The translations under genes and the position numbers were made by a program. This document shows positions 38,180-53,740 of a DNA stretch of 64,000 nucleotides, piece after piece. The stretch's first letter is position 1. Every line of letters starts with the position of its first letter. The notes below the pieces were generated by a model. It was not told the origin of the DNA. It worked only from the letters and a program-made list of their open reading frames with translations, and searched no databases. The DNA comes from Octopus bimaculoides (Eukaryota). Where the stretch lies: contig NC_068989.1 in the NCBI RefSeq assembly GCF_001194135.2, forward strand, positions 88,514,984 to 88,578,983. The letters run 5' to 3'.

Positions 38180-38367
38180 TTTTTCTTGTTTAAATTACAC
38201 TTCAAATTTTTTGCGGAAAAAATATACTTACATCAGATGTATAACAACAGGAACACTAGCAAATAGGTGCAGATGTGTAGAATGAAAAATGTTACACTGA
38301 TGTGAGAGATAAATGTTGAAAAGAGAGAGTGTATATTTCAGAAGCTATGTGTAAATACAATGTTGAA

Positions 38368-38472
38368 ATTGTTCCTACTTTCACTTTCAAGTGAAATAAC
38401 AAATGATTGTTCCTACTTTCACTTTCAGTGAAATAACAAATGAAAATTGTTCCTGTTCTCACATTCAGTGAG
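38368..38472. repeat. Two full and one partial ~37-bp tandem units in the tubulin 3' UTR
   Basis: ATTGTTCCTACTTTCACTTTCA(A)GTGAAATAACAAATG twice, then a diverged third copy. Confidence 0.85.
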
Positions 38473-38517: not shown

Positions 38518-39476
38518 TCAATATTCTTCCACTCCAGGTTCCTCTTCATCCACAAATACTGTTTCAGCACCAGCCTCTTTGTAGTCTTCTTCCAGTGCAG
38601 CCATATTTTCTCGTGTCTCAAGAAATTCATCTAATGTCATGCCTTCAGAAATATACCAATGAACAAAAGCTTTTTTGCGAAACATTAAATCAAATTTGTA
38701 ATCAAGACGTGCCCAGGCTTCACGAATTGCTGTTGTATTACTAAGCATGCAAACAGCTCGAATAGAATTCCCTATGTCACTACCAGGAACTGCAAATGGG
38801 GGTTGACTGTTGATGCCTATTTTGAATCCAGTCGGACACCAGTCAACAAAATGTATCTTGCTTGATCGCTTGATGTTTTGCAATGCGTAGTTAACCTTAC
38901 TTGGGCTAACATCTCCTCTGTAGAGGAGGCAACATGCCATATATTTAGCAGATTGAGGTGAACAATTAACCATTTGATTGTGAGGTGCAAAACACTGGTT
39001 GGTTAAATGTTGAATGCTTACCACTGAGCGTAAAATATTCACATCTGTCATTAGTGGAGAGTAAGTGGCCAGGGGAAAGTGAATTCGAGGATAAGGTACC
39101 AGGTTGGTCTGAAATGCACTAAGGTTTACTTGAAGGGAACCTTCAAAACGTAGTGGGGTTGTGATTGAGCTGAGTACATGAGAAATGACCTGGTTCAGGT
39201 TTTTATACATTGGACGTGAAACTTTAAGCTTGTTATGACAGATTTTATAAATAGCTTCATTGTCAAGAAGGAAACTGCAGTCGGAATGGTCCATAGTGCA
39301 GTGTGTGGTGAGCAGTGAGTTGTATGGTTCCACCATGCTTGTCGATAAATGAGGTGACGGGTAAACAATGAAATTTATCTTTGATTTCTTTGGAAAGAGC
39401 TGACTAAGAGCTTGTGCTAGGATTGCTGTGAAACCAGAACCGGTACCGCCACCTAAACTGTGAGAAAGAAGGAAAC
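38518..39476 (-). CDS. TUBA: Alpha-tubulin last coding exon, residues 134-452 (959 nt)
   Basis: Acceptor atttcag|GTTTCC. Uninterrupted ORF from (G)[14 protein letters not shown] to EEEPGVEEY, with TGA at 38520-38518. Confidence 0.97.
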
Positions 39477-42400: not shown

Positions 42401-45400
42401 AAATAAAACACTCACTGTTTGGTTAACTAAATTCATTGAAATTGTGTCTAAGTGACTAGATCAGCACAGTGACCATCCTGTATTTTTAAGGATACACAAA
42501 ACTACATTATCTAATGGATCCTTTCTTTCTTTAAGGTGGTATGGTGTGATTTGGGGGAAATTTTGCTGCTATTTCTAGTAGGTTGATCAAGCAGTAGTGT
42601 AGCTGGTGGGGTGTGTGGCACTTTTGGTTACGCTGTATAAATCTGTATAGGCTTGAGTGATGGTGGGGGTGGAGAGGGGAGGTTGAGTCAACTCTGCTTA
42701 TCTCACTCATTCACACATAATCGCAAAAGCTGTCCAACCAAGGTGCTACTATGAACAGAACTTTCTGATATTACTCTGTTGTTTTTCATTGGACCATCAT
42801 GTCCAATACAAGCTTTAAGCAATAAACATATGATGAATTATCAACAAGACTTTCCCATTCATCTCATTCTTGATAGCATAACACATTCATTTCATCTTAT
42901 TGTTAAATGTTAAATGTTTAAATAAACAGGGTAGGATTAAAGAGCCACAGATACTTATAGATACTTATGTAGGATCTCAAATTTTACAGAGAAGTGCAAG
43001 GTTTTGAGTGTAACAACTACATGCTAACAATTTAACTCTTTTGATCCCAGCCTAACTGAAACTACCTCTGACTCTGTAGTACAAATGTCTTGTTTTCATA
43101 AGTTGTGAATTAAAATCTCCCACCAAACCTTAGTCACAATTTATGTTCCTAACACTAGCTTAATAATAACTAAGTTATTGTACTAAATTCTTTGTTATAT
43201 TTAAAATCAATTGAAAGAAACACAGAGCATCTCAACAGAAATATGGTAACAAAAGGGTTAACAAATGATACCAACCCGGCTGAAACTGCCTCTGGCTCTG
43301 TTGTACAAATGTCTTGTTTTGAAAAGTTCTGAATTAAAATCGGAAAGAAACCAAAAACAAAAGAACTATACACATGCATACACACACACTCATACACATT
43401 CGCACACAAACACTCACACATACACATGTAATTGTTTAGCCCAAAGCGACCCTTGCTTTTGCTGAGATATAATCAGAGACAGTTTAGCTGTGACCATTCC
43501 ATCATTTGTTCAGACATAGTATATCTAGGAATACATTACCTGATGTGTTCTCTTTGATTTTTTTTTTCTTTTTAAGGGGATAAGGTATGACTTATGGGAG
43601 GTTTGGCTGTGAACTCTTGCAAGGTAAGTCAACTATGCAGAGGCTCTTTCATTGACTCAACAAGAAAATATTTGCCAATCAGTTATTTAGCCTTCATTTA
43701 ACTATCATCTCTGTGTGTGTATGTATAACAGCTACATGGTCCCAAATGTTTGAGCAGTACTTCAGATTAGATCTTACTTAAGCTTCAACTAACTCTATAA
43801 AGTCATACCACTGTGCAATAACAAGTACAATTGATAATATAAACATTACCAGTTGCACCTACATAGTGCATGTGCTTTGTTAATGCACCAAATTTGCTGC
43901 AGGACAGAATTTGGATAAAGCTCCTGAAATGATGCTGAGTGTTCAAGAACACCTGAATGTCGCAGGCCAGGCAAAGCAACTCACCTCAGAATGAGTGAGA
44001 ATGGTAGATACTGATATTTTGCATTGTTGTGTCGATGCCCCCAGGCGAAGAAGTAGGATCTCCCAAGACATATAAATAGAGGTAGTCTGGCCGTGGTAGG
44101 AGTGTTGAGTAGCAGTTGAGTAGCGATCATCCGAAGGTGCTAGATAGCAGTGGCATTGAGACATAACAAGCATATAAGTCATAAACCAGCAATTCAATTC
44201 ATTTCAAGATGATCTGAGTACTTGGTATTGATAAACCTAATGGCAAAATATTGGTATCTACCATCCTCAGTGATTCCAAGGTAAGATGTCTCACTTTGTC
44301 TGTGACATCCAGGTATTCTTTAAGACTTAACATATGGGGTGCTTTCCCCAGATGCTATTCTGCAGCAAATTTGGCATCTAAGCAAAACACATGCACTGCA
44401 GATGTATGACCCACAATGTTTACATTACAAGAGCTGCTTTTAATTTGTAATTTGATAATCAATAATAATATAGTTAAAATTATCCAGAGATATCTCACAA
44501 CTCATCATCAATCCCTGGACATTATTTTCTTAAGCCCTCAGACCCTTTGGGCCAGTTACCTGGTTTTCATGACATGTGAGTGACCAAGATCACAATGCTC
44601 CTCTTGAACAGAATATCAGTCTGTCACAGGGTTACACATTTACAACTGGATGAACTGGAACAACATGAAACGAAGAGTTTTGCTCTGGAGCACAACACAC
44701 CACCCAGTCTGGGAATAGAAACCACGATCTTGCAACAATGACTACAACGCCGTAACCACTTGGTTACATGCCTTCACACCTTACAATTGATCTTTTTATA
44801 ATATAGGTAGCATTATCAACAGATACCTCACAACTGATGTTGTATATGATCTGATAATAATACAATTAGAATTACAGACAGATATTTTGGAACTGATTTT
44901 GTAATTAATATAGTTAGAATTATCAACAGATACCTTGTAACTGATCACAGTCCTCAGCAAGTTTTTCTATTCTCTCAACAGCAACCTCTAACGCTTCTCG
45001 GCCAACCCCGTAGTAACCACGGGCAAAGTTATTGGCAGCATCTTCTTTCCCAGACAGAAAAGTGTTTGGATGAAAGAGGCTCTTGTATTTTCCGGACCGT
45101 ACAACATCTGAAATCATGATGGTATGGTTAAAAAACAGACAGAAGATTACAAAAAAAAATGTTAAATAATAAAAAGAAATAATAGTAGGAGACAAGAGTA
45201 TTGACCATGTTTTGAGTGAGTGCTATATACTAACGCAAAAGGAGTACAAGCACAGACATAGGCATGACTGTGTTGGCAAAAGAGTGCATTGGGATGTCAG
45301 CCAAGGGTGTGGCTTCAAAACAACTGGAAAGTGGTGTGAATATGAACCAAAGGCTGTGATAGAAAATGAGAATTACAAGAACTTGTGGGACTTTGTTATA

Positions 45401-48400
45401 AAGACTGACTGTACTATTGAAGCAATAAGACCAGATAGAGGAAGAAATAAAGAAACGGTGCAAGATCGACGATTTTGCAATTCCCTGGTAGCAGAGTTGA
45501 TACCAAAGAAATTGAAAAAAATCGAGAAATAGCAGGAGCTGACCAGAGAGCTGAAAAGACTGTGGAGGACCAAACCAACAATTATTCCTGCAGTAATTGG
45601 TACACTTGGTACAACACCCAAAATGCTATCGGGAAACTGGAATTGAAACTTGCATTGTTGACCTGTAGAAAAGTGCCATCTTACATTCTGCAATAATTCT
45701 AAGAAAGATTCTTGAGATTTGAGGAGACTTGTTGTCAGCAAAGATAAAATACCTGCTAACTAAATTAGCATGCACTAGCATAATAATGATGTTGTTGTTG
45801 TTGATGATGATGATGATTCTTTCTAATTTTTGCCACAAGACCAGCAATTTTGAGGGGAGGGGAAAGTTGATTACATCAGCTCCAGTGATCAACTTGGACT
45901 TATTTTATTGACCTCATAAGCATGAAAGACAAAATCATTCTCAGTGGTATTTGAACTCAGAATGTAAAGAGCTGGTAGAAGTGCTGCTGAGTATTTTGTC
46001 CAGGGCAGCAGCAGCAGCAGCAGCAGAAGAAGAAGAAGAAGAAGAAGAAGAAGAAGAATTCATTTATTGGCCACAAGGGCTTACATAAAATTACAATAAA
46101 TCACATACAACAACATAAAAGACAAAAGCAGGACGATTCAATGGGTTTTACAACGTGTAAACAAAATAATAACAATTAAAATTAAACAATTTAAAACTCC
46201 CAATAAGAGAGGTGCATTAAGGACCTCGTGAAAAAAACCCCACAAAAGTCACGGGTGCCTGATCAACAGAGCAAGAGCCCTTCTTTTGTTTACAGGTACA
46301 TGTTCAGAATTGGTCCTTTCACACTGGCCATTCTTCCAACATTCATCCATCTTTCAACAAACTTGTTACAAGGCAACACTTCCCTCTCTCCATCCTCAAC
46401 TTCCTTTTCAAGTGAAACTTGAAAGAGTTGATGAGGGCTTGGCTAAAGAGGAAAGTGCCTGTCTTTAGCCCTTTCAAACGGGTCCACCATACTACCTAAC
46501 AATAATAATAATAATAACCAGAAAAGTACTCGGAGAGCGCAGACCTCCGCCAAGCACCTCATTTCCACCCATATACACACATGCTGAAAATCGCTCAATT
46601 TCCCAAACCAACGCTGGCAAAAACATAACCTCCTTGATGGGGGTTAAAAAAAAAATAACACACCCATATGATTTTAAGAAAAAGAAACCCCTTTAAAAAC
46701 AGGAATCATCTGAAGCAGTTCACAACCACCAGCATCATCATCACCATTGTCATTGCGTCCACTTCACCCACATACTGCGCCGTCAATGTTATCCTGACGG
46801 TTACCTTGACAGTCACTTTCACCACCACAACCAGTATAACCACTGCAATACCACCATCACACAACTAACACTATCATCCACACCACTATTACCACCATCA
46901 CCTCAGCATCACACATCACACCGCTCCTGTCGCCATTATAACCACCGATACTATTTTATCCTCCTCCCATACTTATCTCAACCATCAATACTGTCTCTAA
47001 ACAGCAATGCCACCATAGGTTATGTGGAAACGATGTGTTTTCAAGGGAGATAATCAAAGAACGTAACATTGTAATACTTCATGTAAAGTAAATATAACAA
47101 ATGAAAAATCCTTCAAGATTCCATAAAAATTCCCGGATCACTACCAAAATTTCATCATCTGTTCTTTGTGCCATTACCAACTTTTCCTGCAAGCTTCATC
47201 AAATACCATTCACAACTTTTTGAGTTATTCAGTCCCACTGCGTGTCACCTTGGGCAAGTGTCTTCTCCTATAGTCTCAAACTGACCAAAGCCTTCTGAGT
47301 GGATTTGGTTGGTGGAAACTGAAAGAAGCCTGTTGTGTATATATAAGTGCATATATGTTTGTGTATCTGTGTTTGCCCCCCCCCCCTCACCATTGCTTGA
47401 CAACTGATGCTGTTATGTTTACATCCCTGTATCTTAGCGGTTCGGCAAAAGAGACCGATAGAATAAGTACTAGGCTTACAAAGAATAACTCCTGGGGTCA
47501 ATTTGTTCAACTAAAGGCGGTGCTCCAGCATGGGACTGAACCCGGAACCGTGTAGTTGGTAAGCAAGCTTCTTACCACACAGCTATTGCTCATAAATTTT
47601 AACAAGAAAATCTTCTGTGGATCCCCAAGGGCCGCATGGACCCTGGTTGTTGAGAACCCCTTCTAGGTGATGCCCCAGCATGGTCACAGCCAAATGACTG
47701 AAATAAGTAAAAGAACAAAAGAAAAACAATCACAAAAAAAATGAAACAAATAAAAAACAAAAGAAGATAAACCTCATTACAGTAGAAAGTGATTAATTCT
47801 ATTATATTAGTTAATGTCATTTGGTTATATTGTGTTTGTTAACGATCAATATTGTGTATTTATTTGCTGCTTAGCAATTACTGATTATTGATATACTCAA
47901 CAATAAAACAATAACGATCTCTTTTATTGGACACAAAAGGGGAAACATGGCTGTGTGGTTTAGAAGCTTGCTTTGCTTCTATAGGCTTTCAAGTTCAGTC
48001 CCAATGCGGGGCACTCTGGGCAATCACCTTCAGTTGAAATCCATAGGCTAACTAATGCCTTGTGAGTGCATTTGGTAGATGGAAAATGTATATATGTGTA
48101 TGTATATATATTCTTTTATTCTTTTAATTATTTCAGTCATTTGACTGCGGCCATGCTGGGGCACTCCCTTTAGTCGAATAAATCAACCCCCAGGACTTAT
48201 TCTTTGTAAGCTTAGTACTTATTCTATCAGTCACTTTTGCTGAATCGCTAAGTTACAGGGTATGTAAACACACCAATATTGGTTGTCAAGCAATGGTGTG
48301 GGGGAAAACACAGACACACAAACATATACACACACATCATCATCATTTAATGTCCGCTTTCCATACTGGCATGGATTGGATGGTTTGACTGAGGACTGGC

Positions 48401-49505: not shown

Positions 49506-50390
49506 ATTTGTTCTCACCATCCTCCTCCTCCTCCTCCTCATCATCATCATTCAATGTTCATTTTCCATGCTGGCATAGGTTGGACAGTTTGACAGGGTTT
49601 GGTGATCTGGCAGTCTACAACTGGATGCCATTCCTAATATGCCAACCACTTTTACAGAGTGTACTGAGTGCCTTTTTTTTCTTTTTTTTTTTTTTTCTTG
49701 TGCCAACAGCACCAGTGAGGTGGCAAAGTAACTTGCAAGACAGAAAAAGAAGTGAAAAAAAAATGGTAAGGGAAAAGCTCCTAAGCTCCTGCTCCTAAGA
49801 ATTGGTGGGGAATTATTTGAGTTGAGAGGACGTGGCTTTATGCCAAGTGTCAAAAGGTTAAAGTATGACAGAGGAAAAAATATCAGTGTCTCATTACAGA
49901 GGGAGGTGGTACTTGGTTCGTACACATTATATAAGAGCGATTGGGAGCAGTTGGGAAGGTAAATATGATAATGATAAGGTGCCAGAGCAAACTCTCAGAG
50001 TACAGGAAGGTGAGTATATAGGAACAAATAGTGTAAGGTAATGTATCCCATGCTCTAACAACTATGCCAATTTGCTGGCTAATAAATCAAACCAAAAACA
50101 ATCAGTAAGTCGTTAATAAATGAGTTAATCATCTGAACATAATTTCACATAACATTTCGTTACATACCAATTACGGTTGGCTCAAGATCAATAAACATAG
50201 CACGAGGAACAATTACAGATTTCTCCGTTTCATAAAATATCGAGTTGAAACGATTGTTTTTGTGTTCATGAAAACAGCTACATTTCATTCTGCCATCAGG
50301 CTCGACTCCATGTTCAAGACAATACAATTCCCAACAGGATTCAGCAAACTGAACACCAGCTTGTCCAATATTGATGCTCACAATTTCTCC
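38518..50390 (-). CDS. TUBA: Divergent alpha-tubulin, spliced: join of 50390-50168, 45107-44934 and 39476-38518; first (ATG) exon not fixed
   Basis: Three exons with canonical AG/GT ends join in frame (phases 0, 1, 1). With a lone Met from exon 1 they give 452 aa, colinear with canonical alpha-tubulin numbering through the folded domain: [104 protein letters not shown]-terminal EEY. The symbol is family-level only. Confidence 0.96.
40456..40697. repeat. Near-perfect inverted repeat with ~100-bp arms in tubulin intron
   Basis: 40456-40555 is the reverse complement of 40597-40697, with a loop of about 41 nt. Confidence 0.9.
41844..42262. repeat. Diverged direct repeat of about 110 bp
   Basis: ATTAAAATAGCCATCTATGTATCATA...GCTGTGTTAAAAA at about 41844 and 42148. 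Confidence 0.75.
43840..44425. mobile_element. Old element bounded by diverged ~80-bp inverted repeats
   Basis: AGTGCATGTGCTTTG...CCAAATTTGCTGCAG (about 43865-43900) is inverted at about 44360-44400. An internal part resembles 25215-25320. Confidence 0.45.
44934..45107 (-). CDS. TUBA: Alpha-tubulin coding exon, residues 76-134 (174 nt)
   Basis: Acceptor tttcag|ATGTTG, donor CAAG|gtatct. Encodes (D)[35 protein letters not shown]...DCDQLQ(G). Confidence 0.95.
45295..45725 (+). mobile_element. R4/Dong-like retrotransposon restriction-like endonuclease fragment (degenerate)
   Basis: [36 protein letters not shown]...[15 protein letters not shown]...[14 protein letters not shown], with stops and frameshifts. 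Confidence 0.8.
46005..46490 (-). mobile_element. Tx1/L1-like LINE 3' fragment with (CTT)n tail
   Basis: Minus-strand [18 protein letters not shown]...KFVERWMNV..., followed by a UTR and (CTT)n(CTG)n. Confidence 0.45.
48335..48870 (-). mobile_element. SINE-like family C copy with about 6 tandem units, nested in a family A copy
   Basis: Family A 3' part at 48105-48330 and head at 48880-49040 flank it. Confidence 0.75.
50168..50390 (-). CDS. TUBA: Alpha-tubulin coding exon, residues 2-76 (223 nt)
   Basis: Acceptor tttcag|GGAGAA, donor ATTG|gtatgt. Encodes [12 protein letters not shown]...DLEPTVI(D). Same boundaries as the classical 223-nt alpha-tubulin exon 2 (intron after codon 1 and within codon 76). 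Confidence 0.95.
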
Positions 50391-50752: not shown

Positions 50753-53042
50753 CACACATACACAAGGTATACATTTTGCTAGTTCATGGGTAGGCTGCGC
50801 TTATAGGACTCTGATGACTTGTCCATCTCATGGATGGATTGCAGATATAAAATGAAGCTGATAGTGATGATGATGACGATGATGATGACAACGATGACAA
50901 TAGTAATGGTTATATGTATATGAGTGAAAAATAATATTCCATCTGATTGCACCAAGGACATTCTAAATAGTAAATTCAAAATGTTACAAATTGGAATTAT
51001 ATGAGGTTGGCTCTTTTGAAACCACTCTAAGGTGAAAAATTAGATAAATTCAAAACGATTTACTCAGCATCTGCAACAGGTTCCAAATTAACATCTCAGG
51101 ATATTGTATTTTCTATTAGATGTAACTTTAAATTTTGGGATAAATATCTTACCAATCGTATTGTAAACCTAATTAAAATTTCATGTACATGAATAAGAAA
51201 TCTAACCACTCTCCTACCACTTCAAAATCTAGTTAATAACATAAGCAAAAGAATCTCTAAATTATCATTGAGTAAATAAATATTTGAATATTACAATAAA
51301 GCTATAAAGAAAAGCTGATCCATTGATAAAACCTTCAGCCATTACAATAATGTGCTAAAGAGTTACAGATTCATTGATAAGCTTCACTTTAGTCCCAAGC
51401 TCTTTGAATGTCAAACTAATCTCTGATAAGCAATTCCCAATCAACCACATGTATAGCTAATTACTTAATAACAAAGATAAAAAGAATTATGCAATTACTT
51501 AGGTGTAATATGAAAAATATTTTACCAAAATAGCAAACTAATTATGTCGAACCTCCTCAAACAAAATTGCACTGAAGTCAGTCTGCATACATTCATTTAA
51601 TAGTATTAGCACTACTATAAAGCACTAAAGAGGATTGACTGGTAAAACTTTCAAAAGCTGCTACAATAATCACACTTCATCTTTTTGAAGCAAAAGACAA
51701 AAAAGGGAAATGTTACAGTCTATTTGAACTAATGATAATTTTAGCATCTTTTTGGATATCCTGAGCTAACATAACAACAACGACAATAATGGTTTCTAAT
51801 TTAGACACAGAGCCAGCAGTTTTGAGGGGAGGTGTTTCACCAATTCCATCAGCCCTACTATTTGACAAATAATTTGTTTTATTGATTCTGAAAGTATGGC
51901 CTTGATTGGATTTGAACTCAGGATGTTAAGATCCAGAACAAATTCTGCTAGGCATTTTCCTGACTCTATCAATTCTACCAATCCCTACTTTCGGTCAAAA
52001 CATTTAATCAGGACCCGTAAGATGCTTGTTAAGTAGTTTATTACATTGTCTCAATGAGAGGAAAACTATTTTAACCTTCAAAGTACAACAAAGCCAAAGA
52101 CAAAAAGTAGAAAGAAAAACCCCAAACCATAACCTGTCTCCCAAACAATCTACAAAGCCTTAATTGCAATAATATTGTGGAAAGTAAACAAATACCTTAT
52201 AGGAATAATTTGTGTTATTTAAGGGTGAGTGGGAGCAGCAGGAAAGAAGATAGGGACAGCAGTGCTGACGAAATGCTGACATACATTGTTTCAGATTTAC
52301 TCTCTCGCTGCCTAATTAAGCACCGTACTGCATACTATGAAATGTAGTTAACGGTATAACATGCCGTGTTGCAATTTGGATTGAAGCAGTTTATTTGATC
52401 TACTAGAAATAACAGCTGAATCTCCTTTTTTTTTTTTTTTTACTCAGGTGACTTAATTAATAGATGAAATGACTGGATAAAGTAGTACAACAGAAAAGAT
52501 AACGAAGGCGGCGAGCTGGCAGAATCGTTAGCATGCCGGGCAAAANNNNNNNNNNNNNNNNNNNNNNNNNNNNNNNNNNNNNNNNNNNNNNNNNNNNNNN
52601 NNNNNNNNNNNNNNNNNNNNNNNNNNNNNNNNNNNNNNNNNNNNNNNNNNNNNNNNNNNNNNNNNNNNNNNNNNNNNNNNNNNNNNNNNNNNNNNNNNNN
52701 NNNNNNNNNNNNNNNNNNNNNNNNNNNNNNNNNNNNNNNNNNNNNNNNNNNNNNNNNNNNNNNNNNNNNNNNNNNNNNNNNNNNNNNNNNNNNNNNNNNN
52801 NNNNNNNNNNNNNNNNNNNNNNNNNNNNNNNNNNNNNNNNNNNNNNNNNNNNNNNNNNNNNNNNNNNNNNNNNNNNNNNNNNNNNNNNNNNNNNNNNNNN
52901 NNNNNNNNNNNNNNNNNNNNNNNNNNNNNNNNNNNNNNNAAAAAAAAAAAAAAAAGATAAAATAAGTAAAGAATTCTATGAAATCGTTAATTATTTTGTA
53001 GTCATGTTGTAAAAAGTAGGATTCTAAAATAACACCACTTAC

Positions 53043-53048
53043 GGTCAT
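53043..53048 (-). CDS. Candidate first coding exon B of the tubulin (ATG ACC)
   Basis: ATGACC|gtaagt with a perfect phase-0 donor and an in-frame TAA upstream; would give M-T-G-E-I-V. Speculative. Confidence 0.25.
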
Positions 53049-53269
53049 CAAGAGTTAATATCGAAACTGCTAATTAATTAATTAATTTCGAAACTTCTCT
53101 TCGAAACTTCACGAAAAAAATCAAACTTTTTATTCAAGTTTGTTCTGTCTGCGAAATCATTGTTATTCATTTCAGAAATGGCTGGGTTGTCTGTCCGACT
53201 GACAGACTGTATGACATCACAAAGATGGCAGCATTTTATGATGACAATGCTGTTTTGTTGTTTCCTTAC

Positions 53270-53311
53270 CAACACTTTCCTCCATGAGGAAATCTCATCT
53301 GATGATGTCAT
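53270..53311 (-). CDS. Candidate first coding exon A of the tubulin (MTSSDEISSWRKVL)
   Basis: ATG at 53311 with an in-frame stop just upstream, 14 codons, then phase-0 donor TTG|gtaagg, compatible with the phase-0 acceptor at 50390. Lies in non-repetitive DNA. No homology support. Confidence 0.25.
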
Positions 53312-53394
53312 TCGTCATTCTTATGACATCATCAGATAACGTTTGGTGGGTAATGACATTATAAGCTTTCAGAATATCAAGCTCATCTTGCTTC

Positions 53395-53740
53395 AGACAT
53401 TTTGACTGTGGCCATGCTGGGGCACCACCTTGAAGGTTTTAGTCAAACAAATCGACCGCTGGACTTTTTTTCTTTTTAAACCTGGTATTTATTCTATTAG
53501 TCTCTTTTGCTGACCTGCTAAGTAAACACACCAACAGTGATTGTCAAGTGATGGGGGTGGGGAGAAAACACACACACAAAGACACACACATAAATATATA
53601 CATATATACTATGGGCTTCTTTCAGTTTCTGTCTACCAAATCCACTCACAAGGCTTTGGTCAGCTCAAGGCTATAGTAGATCCCAGAATCATGTGATTGC
53701 GAAATAAGGATCTCACCACACAACCATGCCTGCACCTATA
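53395..53740 (-). mobile_element. SINE family A copy
   Basis: Reverse-complement 3' part and head. Confidence 0.75.

Follow-up and report, generated by a model that had tools for sequence, protein, structure and literature searches.

A conserved octopod alpha-tubulin gene in which all three NxDxxE positions of the T7 motif are replaced

An alpha-tubulin gene with an altered T7/H8 motif

We examined a 64-kb window of the Octopus bimaculoides genome (contig NC_068989.1, positions 88,514,984 to 88,578,983; "the window" is this whole stretch of 64,000 nucleotides), in which an initial annotation, made from the letters alone, had picked out an alpha-tubulin gene lacking the glutamate that drives hydrolysis of guanosine triphosphate (GTP). 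Using tblastn with canonical alpha-tubulin, we found a single alpha-tubulin gene in the window, on the minus strand and in three large pieces. Splice reconstruction yields a four-exon gene with GT..AG at the ends of all introns and an open reading frame (ORF) that is intact, as first described; its translation agrees without a difference (100% identity) with XP_014774949.1, the Octopus bimaculoides 'tubulin alpha-4 chain' of 453 aa. The protein is ~59% identical to canonical alpha-tubulins and contains the Pfam domains PF00091 (Tubulin GTPase, 198.5 bits) and PF03953 (Tubulin_C, 147.1 bits), both far above their curated cut-offs. Among the matches listed, every named database protein is an alpha-tubulin, and so are 60 of the 60 PDB chains (E ~1e-190). 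The top PDB match among those listed, the human alpha-1B chain 7sj9_A, reads ...DLTAFQ... in the aligned sequence, that is, it has Ala at residue 254. The octopus protein is also collinear with alpha-tubulin through the alpha-specific S9-S10 insertion, with no gap across residues 359-372. Judged by its sequence, it is an alpha-tubulin throughout.

The position of the altered residues depends on the numbering. Alignment to canonical alpha-tubulin runs without gaps from residue 3 to ~437, both with TUBA1A and, independently, with the PDB alpha-1B chains in HMMER, in agreement with the gap-free count to residue 254 made initially. The PDB alpha-1B chains carry an engineered internal His-tag, and only there does a gap appear. 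An MRE start needs correcting: the N-terminus reads MTGEIV and is one residue longer than an MRE-type start, so the alanine at canonical position 254 is A255 in the protein's own numbering.

Dynamic instability relies on E254 of alpha-tubulin, which, with D251, completes the GTPase site of beta-tubulin, and work on the GTP cap relies chiefly on engineered mutants of E254. The T7 motif NxDxxE, common to the tubulin/FtsZ superfamily, has three conserved positions, which in alpha-tubulin are N249, D251 and E254. Direct reading of the minus-strand codons in the octopus gene gives CAA (Gln, 39132..39130) at 249, AAC (Asn, 39126..39124) at 251 and GCA (Ala, 39117..39115) at 254, exactly the substitutions that had drawn attention to the locus. 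The 17-residue T7-H8 segment aligns to canonical RFDGALNVDLTEFQTNL, and N249Q, D251N and E254A together change all three NxDxxE positions. Outside the octopod gene family, N/D/E is present in 133 of 133 T7 motifs among the best 120 database matches, and conservation across 17 canonical animal alpha-tubulins reaches 97% in the columns of T7 and the start of H8, indicating that the octopus motif is no chance deviation.

The consequences of changing these residues have been described in several systems. D251 and E254 of alpha-tubulin are the GTPase-activating (GAP) residues for the GTP held at the exchangeable site (E-site) of the beta-tubulin below (PMC10056924). Yeast mutants at the D251 and E254 positions are dominant-lethal and depolymerisation-defective (Anders & Botstein 2001, as cited in PMC10056924). 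Engineered human alphaE254A, E254N and E254Q give stable GTP-containing microtubules with an expanded lattice and no catastrophes (PMC11893814; PMC7018511). In humans, heterozygous TUBA4A E254A, E254G, E254K and E254Q lead to severe early-onset myopathy (PMC12262762).

Conservation and remodelling among octopods

We searched for orthologues and found the altered motif in all of them. Q/N/A is kept at the three positions by the proteins of O. sinensis and O. vulgaris, which are 97% and 96% identical to the O. bimaculoides protein, respectively; that of Argonauta hians (71% identical) has the same Gln and Asn at 249 and 251, with Thr at 254. Logan contigs assembled from independent reads of another octopod (SRR11869391, SRR11869394, SRR11869384) carry the same GCA, AAC and CAA codons; with 91% DNA identity to O. 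bimaculoides and 89% to O. sinensis, this animal belongs to neither species. GAA at codon 254, a possible correction from raw data raised by the initial annotation, was thus looked for in independent assemblies and GCA was found instead. Residue 254 is Ala in the four Octopus-lineage sequences, Thr in Argonauta and Glu in none, so that conservation of Ala254 holds for the four Octopus-lineage genomes and stops short of Argonauta. Since the triad is lost in both Octopus and Argonauta, its loss predates their split. Residues 252-256 read LSAFQ in Octopus and FHTLM in Argonauta, and a new acidic residue is present in none of the species.

Intron positions and phases are identical in three octopod genomes, each with three GT-AG introns, and a DUF4773 gene is the convergent (tail-to-tail) neighbour in O. 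sinensis and A. hians as well as in O. bimaculoides. In A. hians the other flank of the interval is formed by a gene of the inositol-monophosphatase family. The common introns and neighbour together make the orthology positional. Four genome assemblies have an intact ORF, and from the fifth octopod two exons were recovered, both intact as well. Two of the annotated models differ at their 5' ends. The A. hians model GAB1603556.1 is without the first exon, which we located through the conserved block at the 5' end of the gene as ATGACA followed directly by GTAAGT (8659..8664 of the A. hians locus, L001). The O. vulgaris model CAI9727751.1 has a different N-terminus, 11 residues longer (MIQESHYLRFMIQ...), and its first exon may be mis-called. 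As for squid, cuttlefish and nautilus, the best 120 matches, in which fused two-domain models predominate, contain no single-domain match between Argonauta (786 bits) and canonical alpha-tubulin (~640 bits), a result from which absence in decapodiforms is not claimable.

Substitution rates point to constraint. Between O. bimaculoides and O. sinensis the ratio of nonsynonymous to synonymous substitution rates (dN/dS, or omega; NG86 method) is 0.158 (dN 0.014, dS 0.090), from 15 nonsynonymous and 25 synonymous differences over 1059.5 and 293.5 sites, respectively (binomial p = 3.1e-8 vs neutrality). For exon 4 it is 0.15-0.25 in all pairs among four lineages, the values across the Octopus-Argonauta split being approximate, and the prediction of a ratio below 1 is thereby borne out. 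Where canonical alpha-tubulins are >=95% conserved, Octopus and Argonauta differ at 17.4% of columns; in the remaining columns the figure is 44.6% (Fisher p = 4.9e-10), and divergence within the family follows the constraint landscape of tubulin. At 46 of 260 canonical-conserved columns both lineages have changed, and 33 of these 46 carry the same derived residue, suggesting that many changes arose in a burst early on and were maintained afterwards. The overall rate is high, with 29% amino-acid divergence within octopods against a mean column conservation of 91% among canonical alpha-tubulins of distant animal groups. These sequence comparisons show an intact gene that has kept its syntenic position and evolves under purifying selection.

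The flanking sequence is conserved on the 5' side. A 315-bp block that ends at exon 1 (53337..53025) is 72.7% identical to the A. hians locus, compared with 75% for the three large exons, and is the only collinear non-exon match to that locus in the 20 kb of the O. bimaculoides locus compared. A promoter as conserved as the coding exons, while synonymous sites are saturated, argues for transcription under specific control. Within it lies a palindrome, ~250-290 bp upstream of the start codon, whose two arms show no difference (100% identity) between O. bimaculoides and either O. sinensis or A. hians. With a further TGATGTCAT copy closer to the gene, the block holds three of the four TGATGTCAT sites in the window. 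The same region, from palindrome to third copy, lies at ~9700..9880 of the O. sinensis locus (L002) and ~8393..8530 of the A. hians locus (L001). The palindrome and third copy are probably a transcription-factor site with bZIP- or TALE-like half-sites.

Within the protein, regions that bind nucleotide are kept and several surfaces are rebuilt (Table 1). As listed by the initial annotation, residues of the non-exchangeable nucleotide site (N-site) are retained in Octopus (Q11, E71, D98, N101, GGGTGSG, T179, E183, N206, Y224 and N228), and so are the WCPTGFK motif and the core of the longitudinal interface, including P325 and the segment ending at 329. In the M-loop, A281I and H283R are common to Octopus and Argonauta, and Y282L was read directly from the aligned sequences. 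In H12, E414T and E415L are derived changes that the two lineages likewise have in common. The acetylation site K40 is lost; residue 40 is Cys, and C40, H42 and H44 are kept in all octopod orthologues. These residues belong to a C-x-C-x-H-x-H run in the H1-S2 loop (C38, C40, H42, H44; window positions 50274..50282 for codons 38-40 and 50262..50270 for codons 42-44), which looks like a possible metal-binding or redox site. AlphaFold2, run on the four-sequence family alignment, returned a mean predicted local distance difference test (pLDDT) score of 30.6, and the model is unusable.

Both termini differ from those of canonical isotypes. The C-terminal tail is of normal length and less acidic than canonical tails. 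The -EEY ending reported initially is found in O. bimaculoides and in the SRR11869391-type octopod, the tail of which ends ...VDESGKETEEY; O. sinensis and O. vulgaris have -AEY and Argonauta -KEY, leaving the terminal -EY alone conserved across the five species. At the other end, MTGE replaces the N-terminal autoregulation motif MREC/MREI. In tubulin autoregulation, MREC is the motif that TTC5 recognises (Lin et al. 2020, as cited in PMC10056924).

Table 1. Features of the octopus alpha-tubulin gene. Positions are those of the window; percentages in the fifth column are identity of the Octopus protein to the canonical consensus of animal alpha-tubulins, unless another genus is named.
Feature	Position	Strand	Description	Identity	Basis
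Proximal promoter / 5' leader block	53049..53337	-	directly 5' of ATG		within conserved block 53337..53025
Perfect palindrome	53297..53337	-	15-bp arms ATCTGATGATGTCAT (53337..53323) and ATGACATCATCAGAT (53311..53297)		alignment of three species
Third TGATGTCAT copy	53211..53219	-	inside conserved block CTTTGTGATGTCATA		identical in three species
Coding exon 1	53043..53048	-	ATGACC (Met-Thr), then donor GTAAGT		homology to annotated O. sinensis start (L002:10001) and direct reading
Coding exon 2	50168..50390	-	223 nt, canonical residues 2-76, phase-1 end; T1, H1-S2 loop, T2		tblastn and splice reconstruction
H1-S2 (luminal 'K40') loop	50214..50291	-	codons 35-60; 38% identity Octopus vs Argonauta	23%	
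Coding exon 3	44934..45107	-	174 nt, residues 76-134, with T3		tblastn and splice reconstruction
Coding exon 4	38518..39476	-	residues 134-452 and stop TGA (38520..38518)		tblastn and splice reconstruction
T7 loop and start of H8	39106..39147	-	codons 244-257; triad N249/D251/E254 replaced by Q/N/A	57%; Argonauta 36%	codon reading and alignments
Segment of the initial annotation	39115..39132	-	CAA (Q249), GTA, AAC (N251), CTT, AGT, GCA (A254)		codon reading
M-loop	39013..39057	-	codons 274-288 (canonical PVISAEKAYHEQLSV); NILR invariant within octopod family	13%	
40-bp tandem repeat	38364..38471	-	2.8 copies, consensus contains CACTGAAAGTGAAAGTAGGAACAAT; just 3' of stop codon		
T1				83%	
T2				83%	
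T3				91%	
T4			GGGTGSG	89%	
H8 end-S7			15-residue segment	94%	
S10-H11				83%	
S9			10-residue stretch kept	75%	
H2-S3 loop				44%	
H10				43%; Argonauta 36%	
S9-S10 insert				43%	

A candidate GAP-less isotype and the alternatives

We favour, at a probability of about one half, the reading that this gene encodes an octopod-specific, fast-evolving and selectively maintained alpha isotype that has lost the GTPase-activating function of alpha-tubulin. The subunit would fold, bind structural GTP and pair with beta-tubulin. Once its dimer had docked at a plus end, the octopod alpha would leave the catalytic site incomplete above the GTP in the E-site of the underlying beta-tubulin, and the affected longitudinal interface would stay in the GTP state, which is expanded, attracts end-binding (EB) proteins and resists depolymerisation. 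In a restricted cell type, the fraction incorporated would set the outcome, from GTP islands and rescue sites up to microtubules wholly free of catastrophe. Remodelling of the M-loop, the luminal H1-S2 loop (without K40), the H12 surface and the tail might give the protein lateral contacts and partners of its own, and the MTGE N-terminus might allow escape from autoregulation of the TTC5 type. On this basis, the octopod alpha-tubulin probably builds or seeds unusually stable microtubules. Either the loss of the triad would be a selected function, or it would merely be tolerated in arrays that never disassemble. We are more tentative about a narrower version, in which the isotype would be dedicated to permanently GTP, expanded-lattice microtubules or segments in a particular cell type, as an animal counterpart of engineered E254A that would differ from it in lateral contacts, luminal loop and the surface for motors and microtubule-associated proteins. 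Of the naturally hydrolysis-dead isotype that the initial annotation proposed, what stands is a conserved, selected alpha-tubulin without the catalytic Glu and with the whole triad gone; the stabilising or capping effect remains a prediction.

Several observations weigh against this reading. No spliced transcripts were seen: the 90% cluster of the protein consists of genome-derived models and two unspliced Logan fragments only, and a 206-aa query across two internal exon junctions matched no spliced fragment, a weak negative in that its matches reached at most 361 aa and 61% identity and the query's own protein was unlisted. The disease caused by heterozygous TUBA4A E254 variants in humans (PMC12262762) implies that a GAP-dead alpha-tubulin which enters the lattice must be tightly restricted. 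Three regions are strongly diverged, namely the M-loop (13%), the H2-S3 loop (44%) and H10 (43%), the last of which contributes to the inter-dimer face. Two Argonauta substitutions, N101S and Y224L, affect the N-site GTP pocket, and nucleotide binding may be drifting in that lineage; its H8 has drifted further too (L252F, S253H, F255L, Q256M). Finally, dS between Octopus and Argonauta is ~1.15-1.2, near saturation, which makes that omega value approximate.

The divergence of the M-loop, H10 and H12 leaves room for a functional but non-canonical protein. It could be a non-polymerising partner of beta-tubulin with a sequestering or regulatory role, an end-specific subunit such as the first alpha layer on a template or a cap, or it could belong to a special junction or to a polymer other than the microtubule, and the GAP residues would then be dispensable because the minus-end face no longer meets E-site GTP. 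Such a role fits the relaxation of the whole minus-end face of alpha, seen in T7 and the start of H8 and in H10 in both genera, and the lateral elements that are remodelled yet conserved within the family (the M-loop with its invariant NILR, and the H1-S2 loop at 23%), together with the changes common to both lineages on the motor and microtubule-associated-protein surface of H12. It sits less well with the structural core of the longitudinal interface, which is kept, P325 included, with the acidic tail and terminal Tyr, features that matter only on a polymer surface, and with divergence that tracks the canonical constraint pattern. A protein that forms polymers is favoured by what has been retained, namely the nucleotide loops, the core longitudinal elements, the acidic tail and its terminal Tyr, and we regard a non-canonical role as unlikely, while giving it serious weight.

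Coleoids recode RNA extensively, and hydrolysis might be retained or restored by such adenosine-to-inosine (A-to-I) editing of the site or by another carboxylate residue. AAC (N251) could indeed be edited to GAC (Asp). At residue 254 this route is ruled out, as A-to-G changes cannot make a Glu codon from GCA (Ala) or from the Thr codon of Argonauta, and a compensating acidic neighbour is ruled out likewise, none having been gained at 252-256 in any species. Even the minimal change E254Q abolishes hydrolysis in human tubulin (PMC11893814), and we consider compensation improbable. Still less credit is due to an unexpressed or decaying duplicate, a relic with a fortuitously intact ORF. The lack of transcript evidence would suit it, as would a rate of change far above that of canonical alpha-tubulin, and against it stand the intact ORFs of four assemblies and of two exons from the fifth octopod, the conserved GT-AG introns, the omega of 0.15-0.25 (p = 3e-8), the 33 common derived residues and a promoter conserved despite dS >1. 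A pseudogene is ruled out by the intact ORF, conserved introns and non-neutral dN/dS, and a retrogene by the presence of introns. That codon 254 is an artefact of assembly, sequencing or annotation has next to no probability: the window does contain 11 assembly gaps, and intron 1 has one of these, yet GCA recurs in O. sinensis and in the independent Logan assemblies (SRR11869391 and sibling runs), and three independent genome annotations yield the same protein. Together, these assemblies and annotations effectively refute it.

Comparable tubulins and minor features of the locus

The closest known counterpart of the octopod gene is the alpha3-tubulin of coccidia, described bioinformatically in PMC10056924 from Toxoplasma (TGME49_231400), with homologues in Hammondia, Neospora, Besnoitia and Cystoisospora and in Eimeria (ETH2_0609600). 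In both, D251 and E254 are lost and the loss is conserved among related species. Both also have an extra residue in the N-terminal motif (MPREI or MPGEV in coccidia, MTGEI in octopods) and a non-conserved M-loop and H1-S2 loop (PMC10056924). The authors of that study read coccidian alpha3 as a sign either of stable microtubules or of decay. The two differ in their replacements (T plus Q/H or C plus S in coccidia, N/A or N/T in octopods), in a Glu that Toxoplasma alpha3 keeps one position away, and in a coccidian tail of 40-48 residues compared with the normal length in octopods (PMC10056924). The loss of N249 as well sets the octopod protein apart. Given the different kingdoms, we presume from taxonomy that the genes arose independently and form a functional kind, not a clade. 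In the literature searched we found no functional test of coccidian alpha3 or of the octopod protein.

Other tubulins resemble the octopod protein in single respects. Engineered human alphaE254A (e.g. PDB 7sj9; PMC7018511, PMC11893814) is changed at the same residue, in Octopus with the same Ala substitution, and PMC11893814 reports that E254 mutants have a lattice in the GTP state, to which EB proteins bind along its length, and undergo no catastrophes. Those mutants are point changes in wild-type alpha-1B. In the octopod protein ~41% of positions are different, among them D251, N249 and positions in the M-loop, H10 and H12, and the behaviour of the engineered proteins is therefore not simply transferable to it. 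TUBA4A p.Glu254Ala, Gly, Lys and Gln likewise affect the same residue of an animal alpha-tubulin, E254A among them; they enter the lattice with little visible disruption of the cytoskeleton, yet are dominantly harmful (PMC12262762). They are de novo or sporadic heterozygous variants of a conventional isotype (PMC12262762), in contrast to the octopod gene, a dedicated paralogue, long fixed and selected.

Beta-tubulin offers a natural precedent for a subunit with a non-catalytic residue 254. Its T7/H8 motif, GQLNADLRK, places Lys254 at the intradimer interface, where it is non-catalytic, so the covered N-site GTP is never hydrolysed; this motif is visible in the beta-like representatives of the 50%-identity clusters that we surveyed. 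Beta-tubulin keeps N249 and D251 and has Lys at 254, unlike the octopod alpha, which would cover the exchangeable and not the structural site.

We used the same clusters to survey residue 254 more widely, taking the best 150 representatives; octopod proteins are not their own representatives at this identity, which places close orthologues outside the reach of the survey. Among the 111 non-beta representatives that cover the site, residue 254 is E in 71, D in 13 and another residue in 27, with the whole triad lost in 11. These eleven (P0163, P0165, P0178, P0202, P0211, P0218-P0221, P0223 and P0227) are mostly metagenome or read-archive contigs. Only two are named, from the trematode Paragonimus westermani (KAF8569058.1, S/N/A) and the bug Ranatra chinensis (KAL1117271.1, K/S/D). 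Like the octopod protein, both keep an alpha-like H8-S7 motif and have lost N/D/E; unlike it, they are single hypothetical models, 39-42% identical to canonical alpha-tubulin, and are not orthologous to the octopod gene. The triad-less representatives, being mostly single unverified models, show recurrence at best, and alpha-tubulins without GAP residues may possibly form an unrecognised class across eukaryotes.

Whether the protein had been described before was left undecided by the initial annotation. Coccidian alpha3 (PMC10056924) is a described counterpart; in the literature searched we found no description of the octopod gene, nor of any animal alpha-tubulin naturally without E254, for cephalopods or other animals. 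The octopod gene is the first animal example that we have found of a kind already noted in coccidia. If the favoured reading is right, a paralogue without NxDxxE, selected in at least two distant octopod lineages, would show that animals can use a hydrolysis-dead subunit safely, and it would reveal the site, the dose and the compensating changes in lateral contacts, tail and autoregulation that this takes. It would also supply naturally co-adapted sequences for GTP-state lattices in vitro. Seen alongside coccidian alpha3 and scattered proteins of alpha-like type, the gene raises the prospect that isotypes have repeatedly specialised by losing the GAP function of alpha. Should the gene be unexpressed or its protein non-polymerising, the finding shrinks to a curious fast-evolving paralogue.

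The remaining features of the window are minor. Rfam and tRNA scans of the 64-kb window gave no matches. An ORF at 10370..11113 (+) has a weak DUF4773 match (24.2 bits, under the Pfam cut-off of 27) and probably represents coding exon 1 of the tail-to-tail DUF4773 neighbour. The 40-bp tandem repeat downstream of the tubulin stop codon lies presumably within the 3' untranslated region; O. sinensis and the SRR11869391-type octopod have two copies, and none is recognisable in Argonauta. The eleven assembly gaps total 4,228 N and comprise 5695..6522, 23116..23699, 29701..30478, 33081..33978, 52546..52939 and six shorter runs, one of the eleven falling inside tubulin intron 1. TA/CA microsatellites are abundant, dispersed repeats (for example at ~53614..53680 and 47228..47343) recur many times in the O. 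sinensis locus, and the GC content of the window is 37.5%.

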